The notes under the pieces are model-generated. The model saw only the letters and a list, made by a program, of their open reading frames with translations. It was not told the DNA's origin and made no database searches. A stretch of 64,000 nt of DNA, taken from the NCBI RefSeq assembly GCF_902459465.1, contig NC_047079.1, forward strand, positions 1,674,001-1,738,000. The letters are read 5' to 3'. The position numbers and the translations under genes were made by a program. Positions within the stretch are counted from its first letter, which is position 1. The number at the start of each line of letters is the position of its first letter. This document shows positions 8,143 to 64,000 of this stretch, in pieces. Source of the DNA: Asterias rubens. Taxonomy: Eukaryota.

Positions 8143-8630
8143 TGCTGTCGTGAGAGAAATGATAAAGACCTTGATGCTTCTCTGAACAAAAGATTTGGCT
8201 CTTGCGTCGATTAGAGCTTGGATAAAGCAGAACGGTATCGTGTTGGTTATAGTTAACTTCTGAAATTATTTTGCTGTAGATATAATTCGTTGTTTTTGTC
8301 TCACATGGCGTGAACAAAAAATTACCCACCTGAATTTTTGAGGGTTGAATTTGTGCACCTTGAAGCCATTAGCTCTAAATGGAGGAAGCAGATTTGTATT
8401 ACGAAAAGAACAGTTTGGGCCACCTTTTTTATTGGGAAATAAAAATTATTCGACTAAAAGTTGTTCAAAAGTGGTTCGACCCAGTGTTCTTGGCTGTGGC
8501 TGCTGAATGCGCCGTAGCACCTTGTAAACCATAATAAGGTGCTACATTGGGTCTCAGAATTCATCACTGCAATTACCTTTCTTTCTGAAAGTTTGTATAT
8601 GCTCAGCGCCTTGAGTACCTTGTTTGGTAG

Positions 8631-9011
8631 AAGCAGTGGACATTATTGGACTTACTCAAAATAATTATTAGCACAAAACCTTTCTTGGTGATAAGTAATG
8701 GGAGAGGTTGGTGGTATAAAACATTGTGAGAAACAGCTCCCTCTGAAGTGCCATAGTTTTCGAGAGAGAATTATTTTTCCACGAATTTGATTTCGAGACC
8801 TCAAGTTTAGAACTTGAGGTCTCGAAATCAACCATCTAAACGCACACAACTTCGTGTGACAAGGGTGTATTTCTCCTTTCATTATTATCTCGCAACTTTG
8901 ATGACCGATTGAGCTCAAATTTTCACAGGTTTGTTATTTTATGCATATGTTGAGATACACCAACTGTGAAGGCTAGTCTTTGACAATTACCAATAGTGTC
9001 CACTGCCTTTA
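8631..9011. mobile_element. MITE family A inserted in the 3' tail of a SINE
   Basis: TIR GCAGTGGACA.../...TGTCCACTGCCTTTA; the SINE tail resumes as TATAAGACT at ~9014. Confidence 0.85.
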
Positions 9012-18953: not shown

Positions 18954-19331
18954 TAAAGACACCGGACACGATTGGTAATTGTCAAAGACCATCCTTCTCA
19001 CTTAGTGTATCTCAACATATGCACAAAATAACAAACCTGTGAAAATTGAGCTCAATCGGCTATCAAAGTTGCGAGATAATAATGATAGAAAAAACACCAT
19101 TGTCACCCAAAGTTGTGTGCTTTCAAATGCTTGATTTCGAGACCTCAAATTCTAAATTATGAGGTTCAAAATCAAATTTGTGGAAAATTACTTCTTTCTC
19201 GAAAGCTACGTTACTTTAGAGGGAACCGTTTCTCACAATGTTTTATACTACCAACCTCTCCCCATTACTCATTACAAAGTAAGGTTTTATAATAATCATT
19301 TTGAGTAATTACCAATATAGTGTCCGCTGCC
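18954..19331. mobile_element. MITE family A
   Basis: GGACAC..GGTAATTGTCAAAGAC left end, GAGTAATTACCAAT..GTGTCC right end, shared body. Confidence 0.85.
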
Positions 19332-29540: not shown

Positions 29541-29908
29541 TGGACACTAGTGGTAATTGTCAAAGACCAGTCAACTGCAGTCTTCTCACTTGGTGTATCT
29601 CAACATATGCATCAAATAACAAACCTGTGAAAATTGGTCAGTGAAGTTGTGCGAGAATAGTGGAAGAAAAAGGTCCCTTGTTGCACAAGTCGTGTGCTTT
29701 CAGATGCTTCATTTCAAGCAAATCTCGAATTCAAATTCAAAAATTTTAGTGAGAAATTACTTCTTTCTCAAAAACTACGTTACTTCAGAGGGAACTGTTT
29801 CTCACAATAATTTGTACTATCAACAGCTCTCCACTACTCATTACCAAGTAAGGTTTTAATGCTAATAATTATGTTGAGTAATTACCAATAGTGTCCACAG
29901 TGCCTTTA
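29541..29908. mobile_element. MITE family A upstream of exon 3
   Basis: Shared termini and body; ends 107 bp before the exon 3 acceptor. Confidence 0.8.
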
Positions 29909-30014
29909 AGCACCAAACTGATCTCACTGATGTCTCACTTTTGGGCCAGTTTTTACTCAACTGTCGTTGTTTCATTTCCATTCATACCTTTTAATAACGT
30001 TTTCCCCCTTGTAG

Positions 30015-30119: not shown

Positions 30120-30459
30120 GCAGTGGACACTTCTGGTATATGTCAAAGACCAGTAATTCTTACTTGGTATATCCCAACACATGCATAAAATAATAAATCT
30201 GTGAAAATTTGGACTCAATTTGTCATCAAAGTTGCAAGACAATTATGAAAGAAAAACACCCTTGTCGTAAAAGGCTTCAGGCCTGAAGTCTTTTAATATT
30301 TGAGTGAGAAATTACTTCTTTCTCAAAACTACATTACTTAGAGGGAGCCGTTTCTCACAATGTTTTATACTATCAACAGCTCTCCATTGCTTCAATACAA
30401 AGTACGTTTTTATGCTAACAATTTTTTGGGAGTAATTACCAATAGTGTCCAGTGCCTTT
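30120..30459. mobile_element. MITE family A downstream of exon 3
   Basis: Same orientation as the 29541 copy; starts 27 bp after the exon 3 donor. Confidence 0.8.
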
Positions 30460-30793: not shown

Positions 30794-31342
30794 TAAGGGA
30801 ATCAATGTGTGGTGAAGAGGTTTTCAACTAGTGGTTTTAACCCGCCGAGGCCTGGTTCTTGGTAGTTTTACCGAGACGAAGTCGAGGTTTATTTTTAAGA
30901 ATCAAGCCTCGCCGGGTTTAAACCACTAGTTGAAAACCGATTCAACACACTTTGATTCCCATTCTTAAATACCTTTTCGGTCAAAAAACATCAACACTTT
31001 TTGGTCAAAAAGTAAAATAAATGCAAAAATTATAATTGTTCAATGAATTCTTTCAACACAACACCAGCTATGAAATGGTAGGGCCCTCGGGTAAACAACT
31101 CCTTATATTATAAGGAGATTGCTGTGCGCGTTGCGCGTATTGCGTGATTTGGCACAACTGTTCCAGCTGTTGCTCTCGACCAATAGGAATGAAGAAACTG
31201 TTTTATAAGCACAGGTGCAAGCTCGCGTGTCACGCCCATGTTTCAACACTTTTTACTGGTGTTATATCATCTGTTCAAACACCCTAACGTGATGCCCTCT
31301 CGACCAATCAGATTGGATAAACTGTCTTAGGTATTTAAGAAT
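30794..31342 (+). mobile_element. Non-autonomous hairpin-terminal element, family D (Crypton-like layout)
   Basis: ~165 bp left foldback centred on CCGA-GAC-GAA-GTC-GAGG. The internal 14-mer ATTCTTAAATACCT (30961) is the exact inverse of the right end AGGTATTTAAGAAT (31329). A second copy lies at 52522-52873. Confidence 0.75.
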
Positions 31343-32289
31343 ACTAAATAAAACAACATTCAGCATTTGCAGCTCATTCATGCTACCGAAAACCCACCCT
31401 TAACAAATTTGTAAATTCCCTCTGGTGGAAAAACGGATTAGGATTTTAGAGATTCATTTGAAAGGGTTTGCTATTGGATGGTGGGGTTATACCACAATAT
31501 GAAGGCTGGTTGTTACAGTGTTATAAATAATGGCAAAATCTAGCAAGCCTGACCACTTTGAGATTCTTTGGCTGGTCCTCAGGCTTGTTTGAACTGGTGT
31601 TTGGCCAGGGGACCACTGTTATGGGAGAACGCTGGCAAGTTTTTAAGAATGTTTCAAATTATTGTTTGTTCGCGTAATTTTAAGGGGAACAACACCCACA
31701 AATTTGGATAATGATTCATGTACGTGTAAGAATGTTGCAAATTATTGCTTCATATGCAAAAAAAAACAAAAAAAAAACAAAAAAAAAAATCCATAAATAA
31801 TTATTTACACACACACACTTACGTATGTACATGTATGCCCAGTTCAATCTGGTTTCACTGGAACACTTCAGTAACATACATTGTACCATGTACAATGTTT
31901 TCTTTTGAAGCATTGTATCAAAGAGTACAAAGTCTACTGATAAGTTTCATTTCAGGAAAGTCATTCTCAGCAGTGAGTCATCCAGTTGTAAACATTTAAA
32001 CAGTTTCTGCAACCCACTTGTGGAAGGGCCATGACTTGGGGTCCAAAAGTACTTGTTTTTGTAATATGATACTGTGTTGAGTGAAGCAGATTTATTTTAG
32101 AGATCTGCGGATGTCATTATAGGCAAGTTGAGCAAGGAATTTAAAGTGAGATGTTTACAGCATGTGTAGAATAATTCCAATATTATCAAGCACAAGTAAG
32201 TATTCAAATGATAACTTGCTGGTGTTTAAACATCCCCTGAGAATTGTTTTTGCTTGTTCTGAAAAGATATTATGAATTCAAACAGATAA

Positions 32290-32688
32290 TAATAATAATA
32301 TTGAATGAAGTCTTATATATAGCGCACGTATCTACGAAACAAGGTACTCAAGGCGCTGAAAGATAGGTAATTGCAGTGATGAACTTTGAGACCCAATTAT
32401 TTAGCACCTTAAAAGGGTTTACAAGGTGCTACGGCGCATACAGCAGCCATAGCCAGGAACACCGGGGCGAACCCCTTCTCTTTTCGAAAAGTGCACTGGG
32501 TTCTTTTACATGCGTTACACAACACATGGGACCAACGGCTTTACGCCCCATTCGAAGGACAAAGCATTATGGTTAATTGCTTGCTTAAGGACACAAGTGT
32601 AACGGCTGGGGATTCGAACCCACACTCTGCTGATCAGAAACACCAGAGTTTGAACTCGGTGCTCTTAACCACTTGGCCACGACACTTC
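32290..32688 (-). mobile_element. tRNA-derived SINE family F with central domain resembling the Meta-SINE domain
   Basis: Minus strand: A-box-like GTGGCCAAGTGG, B-box GGTTCGAATCC, central GTAAAAGAACCCAGTGCAC..AGAGAAGGGGTTCGCCCCGG, (ATT)n tail. Truncated copies at ~40310-40570 (-) and ~8395-8630 (+). The Meta-domain assignment is from memory. Confidence 0.75.
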
Positions 32689-35654
32689 CAGATCAATGAA
32701 TGTTGCGAGATGCTACATCGGTTTGATGACATTCGTCGAGAACAGGGTGGAACATGTGAAGGTTGTCATCTCCCACCCGGCTTGAAGGTTGAAATGTCTG
32801 GAAGAATTGTTTTCAACCATTTTATTAAACACTGGTTACTGTATACCTACATGTATGCATGCCTGATGCTTTACCAATGCAATAGAGGCCCTCAGCATGC
32901 ACTAGTCTGTACCTTGGTGCCCTTGAACTATTCTAATAGAAACTCTGCATTTTCCTTTTAAAGGTGCTCGTTACTGACTAACAATTGCTTTGCCCTTTTT
33001 CAAGAAGTAGCAGTCCACAGTTTTAATTTTTTTTAACTTAGGGTCAGCATAGCAAAAATAAATTCACAGGTTAGCAAGAAAAAGAGGCTTGTGGTCGTAC
33101 TACTTTCTACTGTTGGGGTACGCAATTTGCGCTAACGTTGTGCAATGCACTACCTTTTGCAGATTAATTTGATGCTAACACTGAAAAATCAGCAATGAAG
33201 GTTGTTAGAACAGAATGCTTCAGGAAGCAATGCAATTGAAATTGCCTGTGACATGTACCCATTTTGATAGTTAATTAATGATAAATTTGATGATTTAAAT
33301 GTCAAATTGAGTTTTTGAATGCACTAATTTTCCAATAGATAAAGTTTCTCATGAAAGCGGGGATTAATTACAAGTCTCATTAAAAAAGTGTAAAAATGTC
33401 ATTTTCGACGGTGATAAGGCCAACGTCAATGGCAATTTGATTGATCACCATCAACATTCAGGAATGAACTGAGAATTCTCTCTACAATATTGTACCGACC
33501 ATCTGTTTAAAATAGTGATGATGCCTATGCATGTATATGAACCTTCTTCTAGGAAACACGGTCGTCTTTATTGGTCTAGTTGTTAAGATTTATATTACAT
33601 CTGTAAAACCAGTAGAGGGGAACACTACAGTGGATTCTACCCACATGATTTAGTCTCGGAGAACGTGACCCACATGATTTAGTCTCGGAGAACGTGACGC
33701 AGCCGAGCAGTCCATCATGGACTCATTCTGAAATGTTTCTGATCAGGGCAACAGAGGCCGTGTACTTCCAGGCTTGTGGTTGTTCAGGCTCTAGAGTAGA
33801 ACGCAGAAGCTACAACCATGTACACCCGTTGGTCTCAGTAGGCCTACACTGTGGATGATTGAGGACACCGGCTCAAGTTATGATTCTGCATAATCCAACC
33901 TATGGACCTGTGATTTTTTTCTCTGGTTTGTAGGACCATGGAGGCCATGGTAGGACTGAAAAATACTGACATTTGAATTAGGGTGGGAATGGCATGGTGG
34001 TGGTGAAGTCTGCTGTTCATGTTGGCTTGTTGTTTGAAAGGCATTCACATTGGTTTCTGTGTGGGGTAATACCACGTTATAGAACAAGCAACAATTGTGT
34101 AGTCTTCTTTAGTTGTTATGGATAACATTGGTGTGAACTTTTCAACTAGCCTGATCTAGTCATCATCGGGAGACACACTAATTAAAACTCTTTTAAAATT
34201 TTGTTATTCTGTTATTTCTAAAAGCTGTTGAATTATCATTACACATGACATGCACACTTCCTGAAAACATTTCACTACCACCAATGTGGTGATAATGTTT
34301 ATTATGTCAATCTTTCCTATGGTACAAACTGGACAATCCAATTTGCAGGAATACATCATGTGTCAATGCTACACGTCATAGAAGTCAGACATTTTGGCAC
34401 TTCATTATCGCGGGTCTGTTAAAAGAATTGAGTGTCTGATGTTGTAAGTCTCTTTTTAAAGGGATGATGCTGGTTTTTGTTGGAAGAGCAAATTCATTCT
34501 TCACCACCAGAAATAATGTTATCGAGGGATGTAACATTTTTCTTTTTATTAGTATATTTTTATTTGATGTGAACAATGAAAATTCAAAATTGACTAGAGT
34601 GGGATTTGAACCAATGACCTCTCAACCTCACGTTTAATGTGCCAGCAGTCTACATACCAAGAAACATGTATGTATCGCGCCCTATACGTTAAAGGTCTCC
34701 CAATATCAATATCAATATCTTTGTTAGAGGGGCCTGGTCAGAAGACATACAACTGTGTAGCTAGGAATCACATTTCACACCCAAGTTTACAAAGCGGCAG
34801 CCAGGAGATCACTTTAACAGGGGATGCATTTTTTTTAATTTCAACTATCAAATCAGACGCCACAAGGGAAACATTAAAGATTTAAGTTTTAGTCGGCCTG
34901 CATTTAAACCATGTTTTGGACCTGTACTGTCACCTGTGCCATTGGCTCTCCTCCCGAAACCATTTAAACTCCTTAGCAGTATGCAGCACCTGCAAACAAG
35001 TTGGCATGAATGTAAAGCTATTATGACACAGCAATCCCTATACTCAAAGGGTTTTGCAGTATCGCGTCTACATGTACATGAAATATGTACTTGTGTATCA
35101 GGGAACAAACTATTTCATTGGAAATGGAGCTCATTTTGCTAAAGGATAGCCATTTGCCAAGAATTTGGAAGAAGTTCCGAGGGAGAAAGGGGCAAAGTGC
35201 CAGATAGGGAAGGGGATAGTACTACCTGTTCCAAAACCACCCTGGATTCTAAGCTTTCTAACTGTGGCTTACCGCAACTTCTTATAAGACAATATGCACT
35301 TGAGTAATTCCCATTTTTGGTACCTCTTTCCAAGAGGCCCAAAGAAAACTTTTGGAGAAATGTCAGATTTTATTGGGCTTGGCAGCTGGAGTCATTCCGT
35401 TCAGGGAACGGTTTTGTATTATGCATGCGAGGATTGGTTTTTGTAACTGGAAACCTTTAGCTTCAATCACATTTGTCTGGGCATTTTTGGATGGAGTGAA
35501 TGTCAGAATTTATTGATGTTGTGCAAAACATGCCATGTCAAACCTTGGTACGGTCTCTAAATCATAGTCTTTTTCACTGTATGGAAAAGAAGGAAAAATG
35601 CAATGAGCATAAATTTTGTAATAAAGGCACTAAATTTCTGTTATCATTATAGAT

Positions 35655-35880
35655 TAATTGGTGGTTAACTTGTGCGGTTGGGTTGGTGAGGTATGTTTTG
35701 GCTCCTTTCACATCTGGGACGCGCTTTGAATCCCACTCGGGGCACTATGTTTTCAGTCCCTACCTGATTGTGTGGGTTTTCCCTGGCATAATTCTCTTGG
35801 GTTTTCCTCCCACATCTAGAACTAAAACTTCCTTCCTTGTCTTCTCTCCATGGGGCTCTTGGCTAGTACAGTGATTAAGT
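35655..35880 (+). mobile_element. Decayed tRNA-SINE with GGGTTTT...TTTCCTCCCACAT core
   Basis: Degenerate B-box TTTGAATCCC and core motif; inverse copy at ~62165-62340. Confidence 0.55.
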
Positions 35881-37781
35881 TTGCTTTTCTGAGAGTGCTT
35901 AGCTTCACAACCAGAATAAATGAAGTGGATGAAATGACAACATTGTGGTGTGGCTGGATGTGTTATTCTTAACAGTGGTGTGTCCTTGGTTTTGATAAAG
36001 CATTGGTTTTTGGAATCTGAGTAAATTAATTCCAATCCTCTAGTTTCCCCCTGTATAATAAACTGAAGGAGGAGGTAAACAATTCAAATTGATAATTGAA
36101 GCAAAACTTTACACAGATTTGCAAACTGACAAACTGATACGGTGCTCACACTAATGAATGATAATTCCATCTACACGTCCAAATAATGAGATTTTGAAAA
36201 TGTCATCAGGCAGTTAAGTTTTCAAGTTTTGGAGTTAAACAAAAATCAGAGCCTGTTTTCAAGGCACTGATCGTTACCTTGGAATTCTGCACTCATGGCT
36301 TAAATATTCCAATGCTTTGCAGGGCCCTTTAAGTGCAGAATTCTTTGGCAAGCTGTGCCATGAAAATGGGCTCAGGGCCCAATTTCTTAGAGCTACTAAA
36401 AATCAGCGAATAGTGGAATATGGAATGGTATTTTGGCTGGTAACCTTATTCTAGTAGGCACAATTTTGTTGTGCTTTTATCTACTTTTTACAAGCAGCTC
36501 TGTGAAATTGGGTCCAGGTAGCAGCGCACATGTGTCTCTACCACTTAGATCATGTCTCTATACCACAAAGTTCAAATCTCTCCTCAAAACTTATCTCATG
36601 TGATGTCACAGGTTTTCAAGGACTAATTTGGTTGTGTCTGTTTTCTTTGTGTACATTTACAAGTTGGTTTCACTGCGCCTTGAACACCCAGCAAGGTGTA
36701 CACTTAATTTGTTTGATTATTTTTGTTCAAATTGTAATTAGGCGTCACTTTTCTTTTCGTTATCAGACGTTAGAGTTTCGTTAGAGTTTCATAACTCATC
36801 AAAACCATTTTAATTTGAATGGGGCATCAACTGCTTGACCACACTCTCTGTCAAGCAAGTTATGTATTTTGTAAATTTTCCTGTTATACATGCATGTGAT
36901 CTGCAGTTAGTGTATTTTTGTATGTAGAATATTTACGTACAAAGCATAATCACCATGATCGGCAGCATATTGCCCACTGCACCTTGTAAATCATTACATG
37001 GTGCTTTAATTAATAGGAATAGGTCTTATACTTCAAAACGTAGCGCCACATACCTTGCAGGAAAAATACTGAGCGCTTTGATCCGGCCCTTAGGGGTGTG
37101 ATAAAGCGCTTTGTATAAGAACCTAGTATTATTATTATCATTATAAACATCTCTTTTGTAATGTTGAACATTTGATAGCCTGATTTTTATGTTATTAATG
37201 CTTCCCTTGGGAATAAGCGTTGCTAATTGCTGACATTTTGCTGTCAACAGTTTCATGATTTACGTCCGGATTTTATGGTCTGAAACAAACTGGGCGCCAG
37301 TTTTGCTGTTTCGTTGATAGAGATATGTTTCAATCTCTCAGTGGAGCATTCAGTAAATGAAGATTGAAGTTTCCAGTACGTTAATTTAGCGGCCATTTCT
37401 ACTGGATGGACAGGGAAACTGTGCCCCAATTTCGTGGCTCCAGTTACACAGTAAGCAAAGAATCAGCACTTATGGAAGCAGTGAATTCTGCTTACGTGTA
37501 TGTCAAGCGTATTTCACACAGGTTAGTAGGGAATAGGGAATGTCTGCCACATGCGTGTGCATAGTCCCTGTTACTTGACATTCTTGGCTTACACAGCTAG
37601 CGTAGAAATTCAGCACTTGCTCTGTAAGGGAAAAAATGGTGATCACAATCTCAGAATTGAGTGGTAAGCAGAGCCATGAAACTGGGCACTGTAACCCCAA
37701 AGACAGGCACTGGTTATACAAACCCCAAAGTATCATTAAATACTCATTATACAGAACAAACATTTAACTAGGGTTTGCCCT

Positions 37782-38198
37782 TAAAGGAACACGTTGCCTT
37801 GGATCGGTCGAGTTGGTCTCTGAAAAGCGTTCTGTAACTGTTTGTTATCAAATCGATATGGTTAGAAAGATGTTGTAAAAGTAGAATATAATGATCCACA
37901 CAAGTATCACTCAAAATTGCACGGTTTTCCTTTTACGTCGCGAACTAACACGGTCGGCCATTTATGGGAGTCAAATCACGGTCGGCCATTTATGGGAGTC
38001 AAATTTTTGACTCCCATAAATGGCCGACCGTGTTAGTTCGCGACGTAAAAGGAAAACCGTGCAATTTTGAGTGATACTTGTGTGGATCATTATATTCTAC
38101 TTTTAAAACATCTTTCTTACCATATGCATTTCATAATAAACGGTTTCAAACCCTTTTTATAGACCAACTCGTCCGATCCAAGGCAACGTGTTCCTTTA
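37782..38198. mobile_element. Foldback MITE family B, symmetric variant with 28-bp internal duplication
   Basis: Same TIR; CACGGTCGGCCATTTATGGGAGTCAAA duplicated at ~37949 and ~37977. Confidence 0.9.
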
Positions 38199-40881
38199 AC
38201 CTTTTCAGTGACTGTGCAACTGCCAGGTTACTCGCCGTTTTACTCGTCTGCATACATATGTACATGTATGTTTTCACTGATCCATGATTCTTATAAAACA
38301 GGTATACATTTTATATACTAGTTGCAAATTTTTACTTGAGCATTTCAAAGGAACTGAGGTAAATGAGGGCAATTGTATAATACTGGAATAGTCTTAAGGG
38401 CACTCAAGGCAATTTCCACGGGCACGGAGGTAATTTCCTCCTTTTTCTTCATGATCAGTTTACCAGCACAGTCCAACAGAATCAAACAAATTATGCTGTT
38501 GGATTTTGATGGGTTTGGGACAGTGAGGGTTTACCGTCTGAATTGATTAAACCTAAAGCCAGAATCAAACCTCATTTCATTAGACATTTTAGTCCGGAGT
38601 CTAGACTGGCGTTTGAGTCATGCATCGATTCGGTTATACCAACCGAATAGCAAAAGTATTCAGTACTTTTCTAGGCCCCCTTCGCATGGAGCAATAATGG
38701 CGATGGCCCCTTGCAATGCATGTGTCATACAAATTACCTAACAATCCTTCTAGGTTGGAATCACAAGATGATTGTGCATGTAAATGGTTTGGGGTTTACT
38801 TTTGGCAATTGTCAAAGCTCAGTATCCTCTCACTTACATGTATTGGATCCCAACATACATAAAATAACACAATTTTTGCTCAATTGGTCATCAAAGTTGC
38901 AAGAAAGTAACAAAAGAAAAAAGAAAAACCCATTGTTACACAGATCTGTGTGCTCTCAAATGCCTTTACTAAAGACAGGACCACTGAATTACATGTACAG
39001 TACATGAATAACATATAATTTTAAAATGCGTACATGTACAAACTGTCTGTATGGTGTTTTTTATATAAAAAACGTTGTATTATTAGAATGGGAATCAAAA
39101 CAGTGAATAACTTTGTTTTTCCAAAACAAACAGTGATGTACTTCCCCTTTAAAGAATGCTTTTAAAACGTTTTAAACAGTACCTTTATCTGTAAAATGAA
39201 ATGGCTGTATGTTGACTGCTGCTACCACAAAATATCTGCGTCCGTACTAGATAGCACTTTGACAAATCTTTATCTAAGAAGAAACCAGCCAAAACTTCCA
39301 TCTACATTGCAAATTAATTCACAGAGAAATGTCATTTTCTGTCATAAAATCTTGATTAAATTGGCTCCCCAGAAACCTCTTTCTGAAAGTGCAGCTACCT
39401 ACATGTGATGTTCTGCTCAAATATCTTCATTGGGTTTTCAATCAAGTTAATGCTCATCCCAAATGAAATAAATATACCCTGATTAGGACAGAGAAGCTCC
39501 AGTGGGGGTAGTTTGTTGGTTATTTCAGGTCATTTTGGGCAGCTTTCTCATTCATTGTCGTCAAGCCTTTTTTTATGAGTCACGACAGCCATTAAGATAT
39601 ATCCATCTATCTCATTTAGCCTTCATAAAGATAAAACTATCCGTCTTATTATTGCGTTGCCTGATTAGTGTAAGTGGTTGTTCACCGGTTTCATTGCGTT
39701 AACGAGCATACCAGTGGTGAGTCGTTAGAGTTGTCCTTTTTTCTGTTTTTTTCCCCCTTGTGTGTTTAATTAAAACGTGACCTATTGTACTTTGCAGACT
39801 TGTTGAAAGTTGTACACAATTTTCCCTTGAAGACAAATTTACATGCGAATAGACCTCTTGCATGTGACGTCACACTCTCAAGAACTGCCTCACTGAGGTC
39901 AAAAAGCACCCTCACTGGGGTCATAGGATTGGACGATGGCTGTTCTTTGTGCGTAGAAACGTGTGCGTGAGCATTTCGCGTTATGCAAGGGGTCTAGGTC
40001 ACCTGATGTCATCAACTCAATAATCTTGGTTGCACCATTTTTGGAGTCAATGTCCTTGTGTGTTATTATACAAGGAAGTGGACATTTTGCATGACACAGT
40101 GTTTTCATGCTTAGCGTAATTTGTATGTGCAATTTGACTCTCAAAATAGCAAGCATGGCAGACAATATACCCGGAGCTTGAAATTTACACTTGGCCGAAG
40201 GGCCGAGGCCAGTAACTTTAGCTTTGGGCCAGTAAACTTATGAAACTTCATGTTGAATGTTTGAATGATACACTTCAGATAATAGGCAAATCTTCCTCTT
40301 ATTTAATAATAATAATAATAATAATATCAAAGTCTTATATAGCGCACGTATCTACCGACAAGGTACTCAAGGCGCTTAGTAAATACATTTATACAGAAAG
40401 AGAGGTTATTGAAAGTTATGAATTCTGAGACCCAATTATGTAGCACTTTATAAGGGTTTATAAGGTGCTACGGTCATTTAGCAGCCGCAGCCAGGAACAC
40501 CGAGGCAAACCCGTTGTAGATAAGTGCACTGGGTTCTTATACATGCGTTACACAACACATGGGACCAAGGGGGGGGGGGGTTAAAGGAAGAGTATTCACT
40601 TCTATATGTTTCTCTTTAAAAGGAAAGAACAACACACCAGTGTATTTGTTTCTCCTAGATTCGGTGCTCAGTGTTATGATTCGTAACAAAAATAACTTTT
40701 GCTTGTCATTCAAACAAACATGCAGGCAGTAGAGATGCATATTTTCATATATTTTATGCCGCTAAGGAACCGAGTTGGTTTATGGATATCGACCATTTGA
40801 ATGATTTAATTTTCTTTGGATGAAGTGTTTGGTCTGACAAGAACTGGGTTTGAGATACTGTATAGCAGGGTTTGCCCATAA

Positions 40882-41020
40882 CTAGGCAGTGTCTGAAACA
40901 GCAATTATGGCTACAGCTGTAGCTAGATCAGCAGCACGTCTGTCAGTGTTGAAGAGTAGGCAGAGGCGTGCGATTTAGCCGTAGCTGTAGCTCAAGTCGC
41001 TGTTTGGGACACTGCCCTAG
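40882..41020. mobile_element. Short palindromic MITE (CTAGGGCAGTGTC TIR)
   Basis: CTAGGCAGTGTC..AAACAGC / GCTGTTT..GACACTGCCCTAG with inner GCTACAGCT/AGCTGTAGC arms. Confidence 0.7.
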
Positions 41021-41338
41021 TCAGTTGGACCAGTTTCCTTGCCATTTCACTAGTCCAGCAGCCTTTTCACTAGTTTGTATTTTGTATTAAATAGGGGTGC
41101 TTTTCAAAACTGAAGCAGCAAGTTGATCCACATAATCAGGGCTTAATTTTGACTGGTCGTCAGGTACATACAGTAGTATCTTAAAACTACATGTAACATT
41201 TGGCCAGCAGACCACTGCTTAGGGAAAGCGCTGGTATGGACCCTTCTCACTAACTTTACATTTCTGTCACACAGTGGGAGATCTGCCATGGTGAAGAAGT
41301 ACATGTATGCAGTATGTAGGATCAAAGCTTAGTGCCAT

Positions 41339-41848
41339 TATACAATTGTTGCACGCTGTGACGGGATCCATGGCGTTTTGTACACCCGAGGGGGAAAATG
41401 GCACCCGAGGCGAAGCCGAGGGTGCCATTTGCCACTGAGGGTGAACAAAACCCATGGACCCCAGTCACAGCGTGCAACAATTGTTTTGTTATACCTTGGT
41501 AATATTTTTATTCCTCTTCTCGAAGTTCTGTTGTCATCTTCAAACATTATTAAGATGGAGCAATGCATAGTTCAATCATGGTTTAACAAGCAGACGGATG
41601 GTTCAAACAAGAAACAATTCTTCATCTGTTGATCGAACCCGCGTGTGTTTTGCACAGCGCTTGAAATCGACCAACGACGGGAACGATCAAGGTGATGTAC
41701 ACCGGGTGTACATCACTTTTCATGTTACCCGGCGCGCTGTGCGTTACGCGTAGTGGTATCATTAGCCATGATGCGTATTTGTTGCACGGCACGTGATAGG
41801 TTCTCGACCAATCAAACTTCACAATTTGCACAGAGGTACATGTATAAC
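41339..41848 (+). mobile_element. Non-autonomous hairpin-terminal element, second family with the same layout as family D
   Basis: ~155 bp left foldback centred on CCCGA-GGC-GAA-GCC-GAGGG; internal GTTATACCT (41488) inverse to the right end AGGTA(catgta)TAAC; subterminal ACGTGATN4TCTCGACCAATCA. Confidence 0.72.
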
Positions 41849-42302
41849 AACCAGTGTTGTGCAACCGACCTAAATGCTTTTTTCATGTGTACTTCTTATG
41901 GCTGGTTCCATGTTTATTTTTCTTTAGTAGGAATTGTTTAAGCAATAGGAGAGCAGCTATATAGCTTTATTTGATTCATAGAGCAGCTATATAGCTTTAT
42001 TTGATTCATTTGAAATTTAAAACTAACTTGATGATCACTACCAACTGGCCCATGGGCCTAATTTCATAGAGCTAAATATATTCATAGAGCTAAATATTGC
42101 TTGATAATTGTCTGCTAAGCAGAAATGATGAGTACACCAGTCACAGATTGTACACGTGGAAGGATTGATAACAATGATAGTTTGGCTGGTAACGTTATTC
42201 TGGTAAGCATAGTGTGCTGTGTAGCTTGTTTATGCTAAGCTCTATGAAATTGAGCCCTGGAACTTTCTTTAAAAGTGTTGTCTCTTTTATTTCCGGCTAC
42301 AG

Positions 42303-46342: not shown

Positions 46343-46632
46343 CTCTGAAAATTTGAATCGCTAAAGTGACATAGATTTCGAGAAAGAAGTAATTTTCCAC
46401 GAATTTGATTTCGAGACCTCAGATTTAGAATTTGAGGTCTTGAAAGCAAGCTTCTGAAAGCACACATCTTCGTGTGACAAGGGTGTTTTTTCTTTCATTA
46501 ATATCTTGCAACTTCGGCGACTGATTGAGCTCAATTTTTGAGCTCAATTTTTTACAGGGTTATTGTTGTATGCATATGTTGAGATACACCAAGTGAGAAG
46601 TGTGGTCTTTGACAATTACCAATAGTGTCTTT
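46343..46632. mobile_element. MITE family A, truncated on one side
   Basis: Body and right end TTGACAATTACCAATAGTGTC match family A. Confidence 0.75.
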
Positions 46633-48643
46633 AATGTAATATTGTGCGATTCACAAACAATAAATTGTGATTCAGTAACGAGTCACCAATACTTTTTAAA
46701 GTCATTGTGAAATCAGCAGTTAGCTTGACTGGATTTGAACTCAAATCCTTGGGATTGCAAGTCATGCAGTCAAAACAATGAAACTCTTAAATTACAAAAT
46801 ATTTGCTTTATTTTTGTTTTGTGTGTCAGCTGTGTTTGGCACATACATAATGTATTATCCTGTAATCTCGAACTTGTGCATGGTGAGAACCTAGAGTATG
46901 CAGATCACAAGATCTCTTATCTTTTTCATGAAATAGGTTCATTGCTTACACATTTTTGTGTGCTTTAGGAAAACAAATATTTTCTTACAAATATTAACAG
47001 TGGTTTAAAAATCAGACCCAAGTCTAGCAAAATATTCCTCAAGACAAAGATTCATCAGTTTTCTAAGAAATCAATCTTTACCTTGACTTTAAGATAGTTA
47101 ACAGTTTCATTTGGCCAGGCAAACCTTTTCAACCAAAATTGCGTATCATACATGACTTGCAGCGCTGAAACATAATCAATATCTAAAATTGATGCGGCCT
47201 ACTGGGAATATTGATAGTGAATTCTTCGCAAAGAATTTCACACGAAGCCTAGAGCCTGAGTTTCCCTGGTGTTGTGAAATCGTTCTCTCGCTCCAATTGC
47301 CCCATTACCATTTAAAAACCACTAATCTTATTGTCAAGGTTTAATTCTTGAGTTCTGTTCAACTGGCAACTTTCTGGCCCCTGGATATGAGACATCTTCA
47401 GTATTAAAGGGAAGGTATGGATGCACACCTACATTGACGGTTGGTAATCACTCTTTAAGTTGATATAAAAACATACTTGGTTAGAAGTGCAGCAGCTTTG
47501 GATAGTACAAAGCTTTTTAAGAATCATTTTACTTTGAAGTAGTATGGTTACGGAACAAATACATCGAGTTTTATCCCCAAGATATTTGAGTCGGAGACGT
47601 TTCCGGCAGACAGTTCCTCAGATTGTGTATCCTTATGACTGATTATTCTTCATGTGTAAACATAACTGCCTCGGATTTTGGCAAACTCTTGAAAGTAGTG
47701 AGTAGACAGTGCTTACACACATCGGTGTATGGGTAAAACCAAATAACATTATTCAAATATTTTCAGAACTAAAAGAACAAAAATTGGGAGGTGGAATAAA
47801 TAAAAATAAAACAAATTGAATTGAACTCTATATAAAATAAATTGTGCATTTAGTTGTTTGCGACATTCACTTCTTGCCAGTTTGCCATACAGTGCAGGAG
47901 CATCTCTTTAAAGGGTTTTTAAACCTTATGCAGAGCAAGTTTTTTTGGCAATGACATGAATCTCTACTCGTTGTATGAAGATGTTTGTAATCTAATTTAC
48001 CTGTCAAAGTTTCAGCCTCATTTGTCGTCAAGTACTTGAGAAAAAAAAGGGAAAATCTCAGAGCAATGTTTTTAGGAGAGTCGCGCAAGTCAATTGAACA
48101 TGCTAAAATAATTTTTGTGAAATTATTTTACTCATTATTTTCTCAAAGACTACAGCAGCTCAGCAAGTAATATTTAAAGGGGAGCTTTCTACCATCATTA
48201 TCTTTAGACCAAGTTTCATGTAAATCTGTGGACATTTGTGTTTTGTGTCAAACCAAAAACTACCCAAACCCTTTAAGGTTACTAATGGTGTTTTGGAGGC
48301 GTAGTGTCCCGATTCAATCCAATCTACTGTTGCAAGTCCCTTGGAGATAGCAGACACCTGCTAGTAATGGAGACCTTACAAGCACACTGAAATTGATTCC
48401 TAACAACTTGAGGGCTTTTAGGTAATGGTGAAAATCACAGGTAGAATGGCTGGTTACTCTTTCTTCACCTTTAGAGACCATTCAGTTCTGTATTGAATCA
48501 TCACAGTTCGCCCTGAATGGCTAATATTGTTGTCTTTCTGACAACATTTCTGTCAGTAAAACATAAGAGAAAATAAAATTTAGCTGTTGCAAACAACTTT
48601 ATAACCAAATGGACAGATGGTATAAATGCAAAAAATAGTTAAT

Positions 48644-50899: not shown

Positions 50900-51124
50900 G
50901 CAGAGGAGATAAATGCCATTGTGGGTAAGGCGTTTAAAGTTGCCTACGCTAGCCTCCGCAGTAAGAAACAATTCTTTGAGCTAATGGAGGAGCTGAACCG
51001 TGAACAGGAAGAATACTTCGCTCAGATCACGCGGCAGCAGAACACAGCAGCGGTTGTTGAAGACTGGATGGATGGTGACATCAACAGGGAAAGAGTGCTC
51101 TCTGTTGGCCAAGGACGAGTCTGG
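50900..51124 (+). CDS. SH2D5: SH2D5-like exon 5, PTB C-terminal helix and linker (AEEINAIVGKAFKVAY...GQGRVW)
   Basis: cctgcag| acceptor; AFxVAY is the PTB terminal helix; TGG|gtaggt donor in phase 0; inside ORF 50882..51142. The exact donor is less certain because its 3' part is duplicated downstream. Confidence 0.85.
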
Positions 51125-62808: not shown

Positions 62809-64000
62809 AAATATACAATTCGTGAAAGATACAATTACAAACAAGCAGATTACAAATAAGCATCTTCAAACAAGTTTTTAAGAGACCTAAAACAGCGAAA
62901 AGAACTAGCCTGGTGAATATGCACAAGAAGACTATTCCAACGAAATGAAGCAGCAGAATAAAATGATCTTTGACCATAAAAACTGAAAAAGCTCTTTTAG
63001 TTGTGGTAAGCAAAGAGCTTGGTTCTGAGAGAATATAAATTGAATGGTTTATGTAGCGTATGATTAAAACAATCACATGAATCTGTAAAGTTAGACTCAC
63101 AGTGCCGTAACATTCAATAGTTCTGGAGCCATCCCTGCTTGAAACATCAGCCTCAGCCAAACCTTCGGCTCCATTGGTCTGTTGATGGAGACGTCAGTCC
63201 CAAGAATGTCCATCACCACCTTTGGGCCCTCGGCAATTTGTGTCTCAAGCTGGGAATCTTTCAGATTATTTAGAATTAAAATAATATTATGGTTTGAGTT
63301 AAAGAAATATCATCAACTGCTACTCAAATAGTTAAAAAAAAGTGAACTGTGCCAGTTTGTGTCAAACTCCTGTCGGAAACACATAAAATTCTGCCACATT
63401 TGGATGTTATTTTGGTCAGCTTTCTACATCAAACTAAGTGCTTCTGACATCTCACAGCCCCCACCCCTACCCCAGAAATTTCCCCACGGTTTCCTTGGGG
63501 AAAGCGTTTGGCAAGGAGGAGGCGTGAAATGGTCTCTTATGGGTCCCCGTTGTGAGTAGAAAGTTCAGCGTCAGATTCAGGGGGTTGATGTAGGGTCATA
63601 TATCAGTCCTAGTTCTCAATCTGACAACCTCTCTAATAGAAATTAAGTTTTTTGCTTTAAAGACACTGGACGCTGTTGGTAATTGTCAAAGACTAGTCTT
63701 CACAGTTGGTGTATCTCAACATATGCAAAAAATAACAAACCTGTGAAAATTTGAGCCCAATCAGTCGTCGAAACTTATGAGATAAAAATGAAAGAAAGAA
63801 ATACCCTTGTCACACAAAGTTGTGTGTGTTTAGATGGTTGCTTTTCTAATGGCCAAAGGCTAAATTAGATTTGGGACGCAGATGTGCTTTATATTTCAGT
63901 ATTCCACTAGTGTGTGTGAAAATGAATTCATAAATACGTGTACCTCAGACAGTTTCGCTATTCCTATTGGTGGAGAGCGCGTCACGTTGGGGGTGTTTAA

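Follow-up and report, generated by a model that had tools for sequence, protein, structure and literature searches.

Hairpin-capped non-coding elements of Asterias rubens as probable non-autonomous Helitron-like transposons

Two non-coding elements, A and B, lie in a 64,000-nucleotide stretch of the Asterias rubens genome (assembly GCF_902459465.1, contig NC_047079.1, positions 1,674,001 to 1,738,000 of the forward strand), here called the window; positions given without a contig or locus are those of the window. Together with a third family, C, and further families, they are probably non-autonomous rolling-circle transposons of Helitron-like group 2 (Helentron/Helitron2; HINE-type). Read on the + strand, the plan common to these families starts with a tail of 3–8 nt, a palindrome of 140–170 nt with the tip C-GA-GNC-GNA-GNC-GA-G, and a subterminal inverted repeat, and continues with a body of ~320 nt (~310 nt in A), the module CACGTGA-N11-CCAATCA and, after 18–19 nt, a terminal inverted repeat. 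In A, B and C the palindrome is set 0–5 nt from the subterminal repeat and 3–8 nt from the terminus. An earlier note, made from the letters of the window, had drawn attention to the long left foldbacks with compensatory changes in their GA/GAA tips, and palindromes, folds and tips were located at both elements (Table 1).

Both elements are full-length copies of large families with sharp ends. Family A gave 3111 first-look candidates in the 417.6-Mb assembly; 40 scored copies are 88–91% identical across positions 1–549, and all 40 are full length. In alignments that include the flanks, similarity within family A ends sharply at TAAGGGAATC... on the left and ...AGGTATTTATGAAT on the right. Family B (1120 candidates, 83–93% identity) starts with TATACAATTG... 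and ends with ...AGGTATAACAA, and similarity stops just as sharply there in 20 aligned copies; its tail is TATA, and TTTT separates the palindrome from the subterminal repeat TTGTTATACCT. The boundaries proposed in the earlier note recur in 30 copies of A and 20 of B, except that B ends at 41850 and not at 41848, the window's copy having a private 4-bp CATG insertion at 41839–41842 inside its right end. The right end assigned to B at that time, AGGTATAAC, is that of the family, though it is interrupted in this copy. In other individuals, too, contigs of public assemblies break at these element ends.

Copies of family C were recovered by scanning fetched flanks for the tip. The family (1426 candidates) has a tail of ~8 nt, a palindrome with the tip C-GA-GGC-GGA-GCC-GA-G, a subterminal repeat, a body, CACGTGA-N11-CCAATCA and, 19 nt beyond it, the end ...GGGTGTTATATAA. 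Copies are 98–100% identical, and the genome contains 906 exact matches to the 25-nt module of family C, indicating very recent activity.

When the right ends of the three families are aligned, 23 of 75 columns are invariant and the spacings are the same throughout. The string ACGTGAT-N4-TCTCGACCAATCA, which had been placed 18–19 bp before AGGTA, lies at 31287–31310 in A and 41791–41814 in B, 18 and 19 nt ahead of AGGTA, respectively. The module of the window's A copy starts with AACGTGA, while the family majority has CACGTGA. Genome-wide, CACGTGA-N11-CCAATCA occurs 1805 times, compared with once for the reversed control, and at least seven classes, those of A, B and C among them, can be told apart by its 11 variable letters; in class D, a fourth family, tips lie ~400 nt upstream of the module on the same strand. 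Because the tip, the 25-nt end module and the spacings are common to the families, A and B are related, and their earlier description as unrelated was too strong. Both are distant members of a single group in which the functional modules, and little besides, are kept. A small tandem array of the B-type module alone, with four units and a 73-nt period, was also seen on contig 1 (26918148–26918391).

The tip of the palindrome is conserved as a structure. The window has three matches to its 15-nt pattern, against 0 expected by chance; the third is on the minus strand in a truncated A copy. In the genome, CGAGNCGNAGNCGAG occurs 2775 times, compared with 24 times in the control. At the first 100 places in order along contig 1, the middle pair of the 3-bp stem is Watson–Crick in 97, and six tip types are present, with A-T, G-C or C-G as the middle pair and GAA, GGA or GCA as the loop. 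A separate search yielded a seventh type, T-A; here C-G and T-A accounted for 88 of 100 rows, the others being wobble (6) or mismatched (6). For 52 tips drawn from three families, pairing holds in 94.9% of cells, both sides have changed in seven of the nine pairs, and the covariation score is 0.58, as against at most 0.12 with the partners slid. Covariation over genome-wide copies, named in the earlier note as a check, is therefore borne out: the hairpin is kept as a structure, with compensatory changes across at least six tip types. Since the copies stem from a handful of founding families, this covariation represents few independent events, not thousands.

Every tip loop is a GNA triloop on a closing C-G pair, with G-A steps on either side. 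The B tip has GCGAAGC and the C tip GCGGAGC, and A retains the C-GAA-G core. The GCGNAGC mini-hairpin is an extraordinarily stable DNA structure that melts at ~76 degrees, resists 7 M urea and occurs at the origins of single-stranded DNA phages (PMC13037366, a 2026 review). The complement of the tip, with a TTC loop and pyrimidine mismatches, has none of the properties of the GNA mini-hairpin. Folded as single-stranded DNA, the whole palindrome reaches –56.9 kcal/mol in A (z = –12 vs. shuffles) and –66 kcal/mol in B (z = –13.3 vs. shuffles).

In calculated folds, the palindrome and the inverted repeats together bring the two ends of the element into one structure. To model a circle or head-to-tail dimer, the last 30 nt of each element were placed directly before its first 170–215 nt and the composite was folded as DNA. 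The result is the same for A, B and C: base pairs form between right end and subterminal repeat, the right end is stacked on the palindrome, and a bulge of 2–6 nt is all that is left at the junction. The pairing spans 30 nt in family C, whose inverted-repeat pair is imperfect (~30 nt, 26/30 with G.T wobbles). The + strand folds more stably than its complement in C (–89.3 vs. –79.6 kcal/mol, with five G.T pairs that are A.C on the other strand), A (–95.4 vs. –92.5 kcal/mol) and B (–80.6 vs. –78.0 kcal/mol). The real strand difference is probably larger, because the energy model gives the special tip no bonus.

These folds bear on the description of the internal site as an inverted copy of the junction of the two ends. 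The subterminal repeat, an inverted right end, adjoins the inner palindrome arm, an inverted left end, at a distance of 0–5 nt, and the internal site therefore mirrors the junction. The match is perfect over 14 nt in A and covers 9 nt in B, where TTGTTATAC (41486–41494) is complementary to 41842–41850, but it is only approximate as a whole, the left tail (TAA in A, TATA in B, ~8 nt in C) having no counterpart. The mirror of a circle junction is a geometric result of the design of inverted repeats with a stem-loop. Likewise, conventional terminal inverted repeats had been denied to the elements; symmetric ones are indeed lacking, whereas an asymmetric pair, terminal on the right and subterminal on the left, is present.

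The flank tables of 24 A and 20 B copies show no repeated flank of the kind left by target duplication. With their defined ends and no visible target duplication, the elements are non-autonomous mobile elements, as had been proposed. One A copy (L027, contig 1, ~25.25 Mb) interrupts a 42-bp minisatellite at GCCATTAA|TAGGATT without duplication, at most 1–2 letters being ambiguous; this copy was also seen to sit at a TTAA|T junction between the 42-bp units. For a B copy (L040), a paralogous uninterrupted site is found at window positions 46649–46725; it is 81% identical and retains CAA before the insertion point and a T-run after it.

The landing sites are family-specific. Positions –4 to –1 of the A flank read T17 T14 A20 A20 (of 24), followed by A or G, with T at +7 in 23/24; the B flank reads A11 C19 A19 and then T14/G4/A2 (of 20), followed by T or G, and is T-rich at +5 to +8. 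A thus lands at TTAA^(A/G), which is T^T only when read on the other strand, and B at ACA(T/G)^(T/G), both sites being T-rich at +6 to +8. In each case the left-flank letters imitate the end of the element (TTAA vs. TGAA in A; ACA(T/G) vs. ACAA in B), and in two copies of C, ATA(T/G) precedes TATACAC where the right end has ATAA. A precise head-to-tail dimer of B (...AACAA|TATACA..., locus L035) was found, and modules of family C occur in pairs 517 nt apart, about the 512–521-nt length of the two copies read.

The conserved end module is followed by the AT-rich terminal repeat in all three families (TATTTAAG, TATAACAA and TTATATAA). By established promoter grammar, the order of E-box, CCAAT and AT-rich sequence on the + strand would suit a polymerase II promoter that faces out of the element; transcription from such a promoter could enter the element only by crossing a circle or tandem junction, and would elsewhere run into host DNA. 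A binding site for a transposition protein is an equally good reading of the module. In one public RNA run, reads fall about equally on both strands of the elements and show no clustered starts, in tables swamped by repeats, and so lend no support to strong promoter activity.

The arrangement of the ends is that described for Helitron-like group 2, which has short inverted repeats of 12–16 nt, a stem-loop after the right one and T^T insertion, and includes a "reverse" variant with a 5′ stem-loop (PMC11417382). The inverted repeats of our elements are short and asymmetric (14 nt at 100% in A, 9–11 nt in B, ~30 nt in C), the stem-loop stands beside one of them near the terminus, and no target duplication is seen. 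HINEs, including DINE-1, have 12–15 nt subterminal repeats and an end palindrome, leave the target unmodified, reach very high copy numbers and often contain tandem repeats internally, and HINE-like elements have long since been noted in sea urchin (PMC4067079). Helitron2-type ends of Fusarium have GAA-loop hairpins, land after TNAT, likewise departing from T^T, and end in ATTTT, and their target resembles the element's 3′ end (PMC5148889). The tyrosine-recombinase (Crypton/DIRS) system to which the earlier note had assigned the elements is not supported by this architecture, inverted repeats with a stem-loop being a hallmark of Helitron-like group 2 and Cryptons being without inverted repeats.

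A mechanism of this kind can be outlined. Helentron Rep/helicase, supplied in trans, would cut one strand at each end of the element, and the cut strand would be freed as single-stranded DNA, have its ends joined into a circle and be pasted into a new site without target duplication. A single-stranded or circular intermediate, suggested before, is the natural reading. The right-end repeat would pair with the subterminal repeat and stack on the palindrome, the subterminal repeat and the inner palindrome arm would act as a built-in splint that holds the ends side by side, and Rep would cut and join at the 2–6 nt junction bulge. The folding strand is probably the + strand of the window. The target and 3′-end logic of the Fusarium elements, together with the strand asymmetry, suggests that this would be the sense strand, with the hairpin at its 5′ end in the "HLE2-reverse" layout. 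The conserved E-box/CCAAT/AT-rich module would serve as a promoter or a protein-binding site.

Candidate enzymes are encoded in the same genome. It contains 13 matches to the Helitron Rep domain, and Helentron frames of up to 1921 aa match a protein with Rep, PIF1 helicase and AP-endonuclease, the domain set of Helentrons, across residues 8–1789. These frames carry DUF6570, a marker of Helitron-like group 2 (HELIANO paper, PMC11417382). The closest named relatives of the proteins are in the sea star Patiria and in sea urchins, and in two copies an OTU-protease-like frame lies upstream of the Helentron gene. One Helentron family on contigs 2, 6 and 11 (L061, L062, L070, L071) has unbroken frames and copies that are 98.7–99.7% identical, indicating recent activity. 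Since a rolling-circle partner was not found, assignment of the enzyme rests on the architecture and on this active Helentron population.

Several observations weigh against the assignment to Helitron-like group 2. No coding copy with the ends of A, B or C was found. At 18 Helentron loci, each covering the Rep or open-reading-frame match and 1.5 kb on either side, where elements may reach 10 kb beyond the gene, there was no tip, module or similarity to A, B or C. The module-to-gene proximity test, made with pattern lists on contigs 1–3, placed no exact C-family module within 170 kb of the young intact Helentron at 148–154 kb on contig 2, and no module with a spacer starting with A, G or T within 1.7 Mb of it. 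At some ten times the length of published stem-loops, the palindrome is unusually long, and the published T^T insertion rule is not cleanly followed, A landing after TTAA and B after ACA(T/G). The orientation of the elements is deduced only indirectly. The empty-site evidence consists of two paralogous sites, one of them at 81% identity, and reads from other individuals, in tables swamped by repeats, gave neither an empty allele nor a joint across an element.

Other searches for related or coding elements gave little. Two tandem copies of AGAGGTATAACAA, the terminal repeat of B, lie 340–390 nt behind the Helentron gene on contig 15, but the surrounding 25-mer occurs nowhere else in the genome, and the match therefore links nothing. 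An apparent short copy at L002, considered as a chimera with the conserved hairpin end and a variable other end, was merely cut by the end of the locus. Viral contigs searched for related loci yielded none; among metagenome contigs, two of which are labelled human-gut metagenome and were taken as microbial, only distant relatives came up, at 28–35% identity and for the most part bacterial helicases, and none of them had a tip or a module.

A separate single-strand system that works without Helentron Rep/helicase, such as an undescribed IS200/IS605-like HUH nuclease acting on ends that came to resemble those of Helitron-like elements by convergence, is an unlikely alternative to Helitron-like group 2. 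IS200/IS605 elements have subterminal hairpins, short DNA guides that choose cut sites and target, and a small Y1 HUH transposase. An enzyme of this type would agree with the lack of a partner near any readable Helentron gene, with a hairpin far longer than in described Helitron-like elements, and with family-specific landing motifs directly 5′ of the left end that imitate the right terminus, as in IS608-type elements. No such enzyme was seen, though none was looked for, and the combination of inverted repeat and stem-loop, as well as GAA-loop hairpins, is already documented for Helitron-like group 2, which is present and recently active in this genome. Replitrons, other eukaryotic HUH transposons, were considered as a home for A, B and C and set aside, as their reported hosts are confined to plants, algae and protists.

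Less probable still are non-autonomous elements of a tyrosine recombinase, Crypton-like or with the internal complementary region of DIRS, in which a double-stranded circle would recombine at a short core common to circle and target. The imitation of the last 3–4 nt of the right end by the left flank recalls the short terminal direct repeats of Cryptons, no target duplication is seen, and the genome has at least 37 tyrosine-recombinase matches, including a multi-copy family with open frames of 338 aa. Cryptons have neither inverted nor long direct repeats, only terminal direct repeats of 4–6 bp (PMC3212892), whereas our elements have an inverted-repeat pair of 11–30 nt and a giant palindrome, and their direct repeats are of 3–4 nt and imperfect. 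In B, the base after the common triplet is T or G at the left junction and A at the dimer junction, which a simple crossover core does not predict. The purine-only tip and the G.T asymmetry indicate one folded single strand, for which a duplex-DNA recombinase has no need. Around two checked recombinase copies (contig 1, 24.93 Mb; contig 2, 3.36 Mb), no exact C-family module and none with a spacer starting with A, G or T was found within 78 and 150 kb, and as far as its reach goes the proximity test is negative for both candidate enzymes. The 338-aa frame itself has at least 10 near-equal copies (for example contig 13: 15628768–15629343; contig 1: 24925693–24926268; contig 2: 3359009–3359584) and probably belongs to a Crypton- or DIRS-type element.

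A chance composite of a fold-back miniature (30797–30960) beside a miniature with terminal inverted repeats (30961–31342, which alone has perfect 14-nt repeats), moved by a DDE transposase with TA duplication, is hardly credible and is already contradicted by the recurrence of this arrangement, each time in unrelated sequence, across no fewer than three or four families and thousands of copies, by the full length of all the scored A copies, and by outer ends of the whole unit that are not mutual inverted repeats; TA does flank 17 of 24 A copies on both sides, but the other 7, and B generally, have no matching TA on the right, so that TA target duplication was rejected and no consistent duplication is left.

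The features of the elements are collected in Table 1. The CCAAT duplicate of A lies 124 nt upstream of the genuine end module; duplicated left terminal sequences have reportedly been seen in a Xenopus Helentron family, which the duplicate recalls. In the truncated third copy of family A, the alignment to A breaks off near A position 352, and a search of the reachable adjoining sequence gave no right end. The right half was lost exactly where a minisatellite array (51060–52521) starts, an array that Tandem Repeats Finder did not report at default settings. HINE-type elements can carry or seed tandem arrays, and this array may have begun at the broken A copy. Another abundant repeat of ~250–340 nt, 74–83% identical to L073:709–1049, occurs at least 10 times in the window (copies include 62555–62812, 61739–61962, 29577–29909, 30304–30459, 19116–19330, 8628–8867 and 46384–46497), two of its copies being just upstream of element A.

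Table 1. Coordinates of elements A and B, their parts and associated features (window positions unless a locus or contig is named).
Feature	Position	Strand	Remarks
Element A, full-length copy of a high-copy non-coding family	30794–31342	+	ends recurring in 30 aligned copies
A tail, TAA, 3 nt	30794–30796	+	
A long palindrome	30797–30960	+	64-nt arms 30797–30860/30897–30960, 88% complementary
A tip, CGAGACGAAGTCGAG = C-GA-GAC-GAA-GTC-GA-G	30872–30886	+	
A subterminal inverted repeat, ATTCTTAAATACCT, 14 nt	30961–30974	+	adjoins inner palindrome arm; 100% complementary to 31329–31342
A internal degenerate CCAAT duplicate, matching part of the end module	31173–31205	+	direct repeat, 82% identical to 31297–31329
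A end module, E-box-like, N11, CCAATCA	31287–31310	+	aligned with families B and C
A terminal inverted repeat, AT-rich, TATA-like	31329–31342	+	18 nt past CCAATCA
Element B, full-length copy of the second family	41339–41850	+	ends recurring in 20 aligned copies
B long palindrome	41342–41484	+	70-nt arms 41342–41411/41415–41484
B tip, CGAGGCGAAGCCGAG = C-GA-GGC-GAA-GCC-GA-G	41406–41420	+	includes GCGAAGC
B subterminal inverted repeat, TTGTTATACCT	41486–41496	+	pairs with family right end in junction fold
B end module, CACGTGA-N11-CCAATCA	41790–41814	+	
B terminal inverted repeat	41834–41850	+	interrupted in window copy; alignment of 20 copies
Third copy of family A, right end missing	52530–52873	–	tail, palindrome, subterminal repeat, ~190 nt body; tip at 52782–52796
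Family C copies	L015:282–793 and L028:2208–2735	both –	found by tip scan of fetched flanks
Intact Helentron gene, 1921 aa frame	contig 15: 12913954–12919290 (L076)		OTU-protease-like frame upstream

New here are the measured covariation of the tip, a conserved end module with 1805 exact copies, the asymmetry between strands, the mimicry at landing sites and the negative proximity tests. Elements of this design have added several thousand very stable DNA hairpins and ~1,800 intact E-box/CCAAT modules to a 418-Mb animal genome, and the end module could make them a large source of host promoters or enhancers. We know of no experimental model for the way in which group 2 enzymes find and join the ends of their elements, and the splint, if it is real, would give a concrete picture of both. 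For annotation, the layout belongs with Helitron-like elements and not with Cryptons. We propose, tentatively and with considerable doubt, that A, B and C represent a reverse-layout branch of Helitron-like elements in animals that combines three traits not described together before: a splint under a GCGNAGC cap, landing mimicry and an outward 3′ promoter. As the landing sites imitate the last 3–4 nt of the 3′ end (TTAA/TGAA, ACAK/ACAA), one DNA guide may read both end and target.

Compared with known systems, the elements share with Cryptons and DIRS the lack of target duplication and the short imperfect direct repeats at the junctions, and an internal site complementary to both ends recalls the internal complementary region of DIRS. 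Cryptons have no inverted repeats or hairpins, however, and DIRS belong to the retroelements and have long inverted terminal repeats along with a reverse transcriptase, whereas our elements are ~510–550 nt long, non-coding and without long terminal repeats, and no recombinase gene was linked to the ends of A, B or C. By analogy from the flank pattern, the elements resemble IS200/IS605 (IS608) in their apparent single-strand logic, subterminal hairpins, lack of classical inverted ends and of target duplication, and a landing motif that adjoins the left end on its 5′ side and is similar to the right-end cut-site motif; IS200/IS605 are bacterial, with hairpins at either end and a Y1 HUH transposase.

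The d(GCGNAGC) mini-hairpin is present at the very tip of B and C, and the loop is GNA in every case, but here it caps a long transposon palindrome between tandem G.A steps, a setting in which its stability is predicted by analogy. The closest likeness is to HINEs, Helentron derivatives and the "HLE2-reverse" or proto-Helentron elements (FoHeli3-5 of Fusarium, and Phytophthora), with which the elements share short asymmetric inverted repeats and a stem-loop directly outside one of them. GAA-loop hairpins are shared with FoHeli1/2, and the lack of target duplication, AT-rich landing, very high copy number, head-to-tail dimers and the occurrence of DUF6570-bearing Helentron genes alongside them in the genome are shared with Helitron-like group 2. 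The elements differ from that group in having a palindrome of 140–170 nt instead of a stem of 5–20 bp, a GCGNAGC-type cap between tandem G.A pairs, family-specific landing (TTAA, ACA(T/G)) in place of T^T, and CACGTGA-N11-CCAATCA at a fixed 18–19 nt from the other end.

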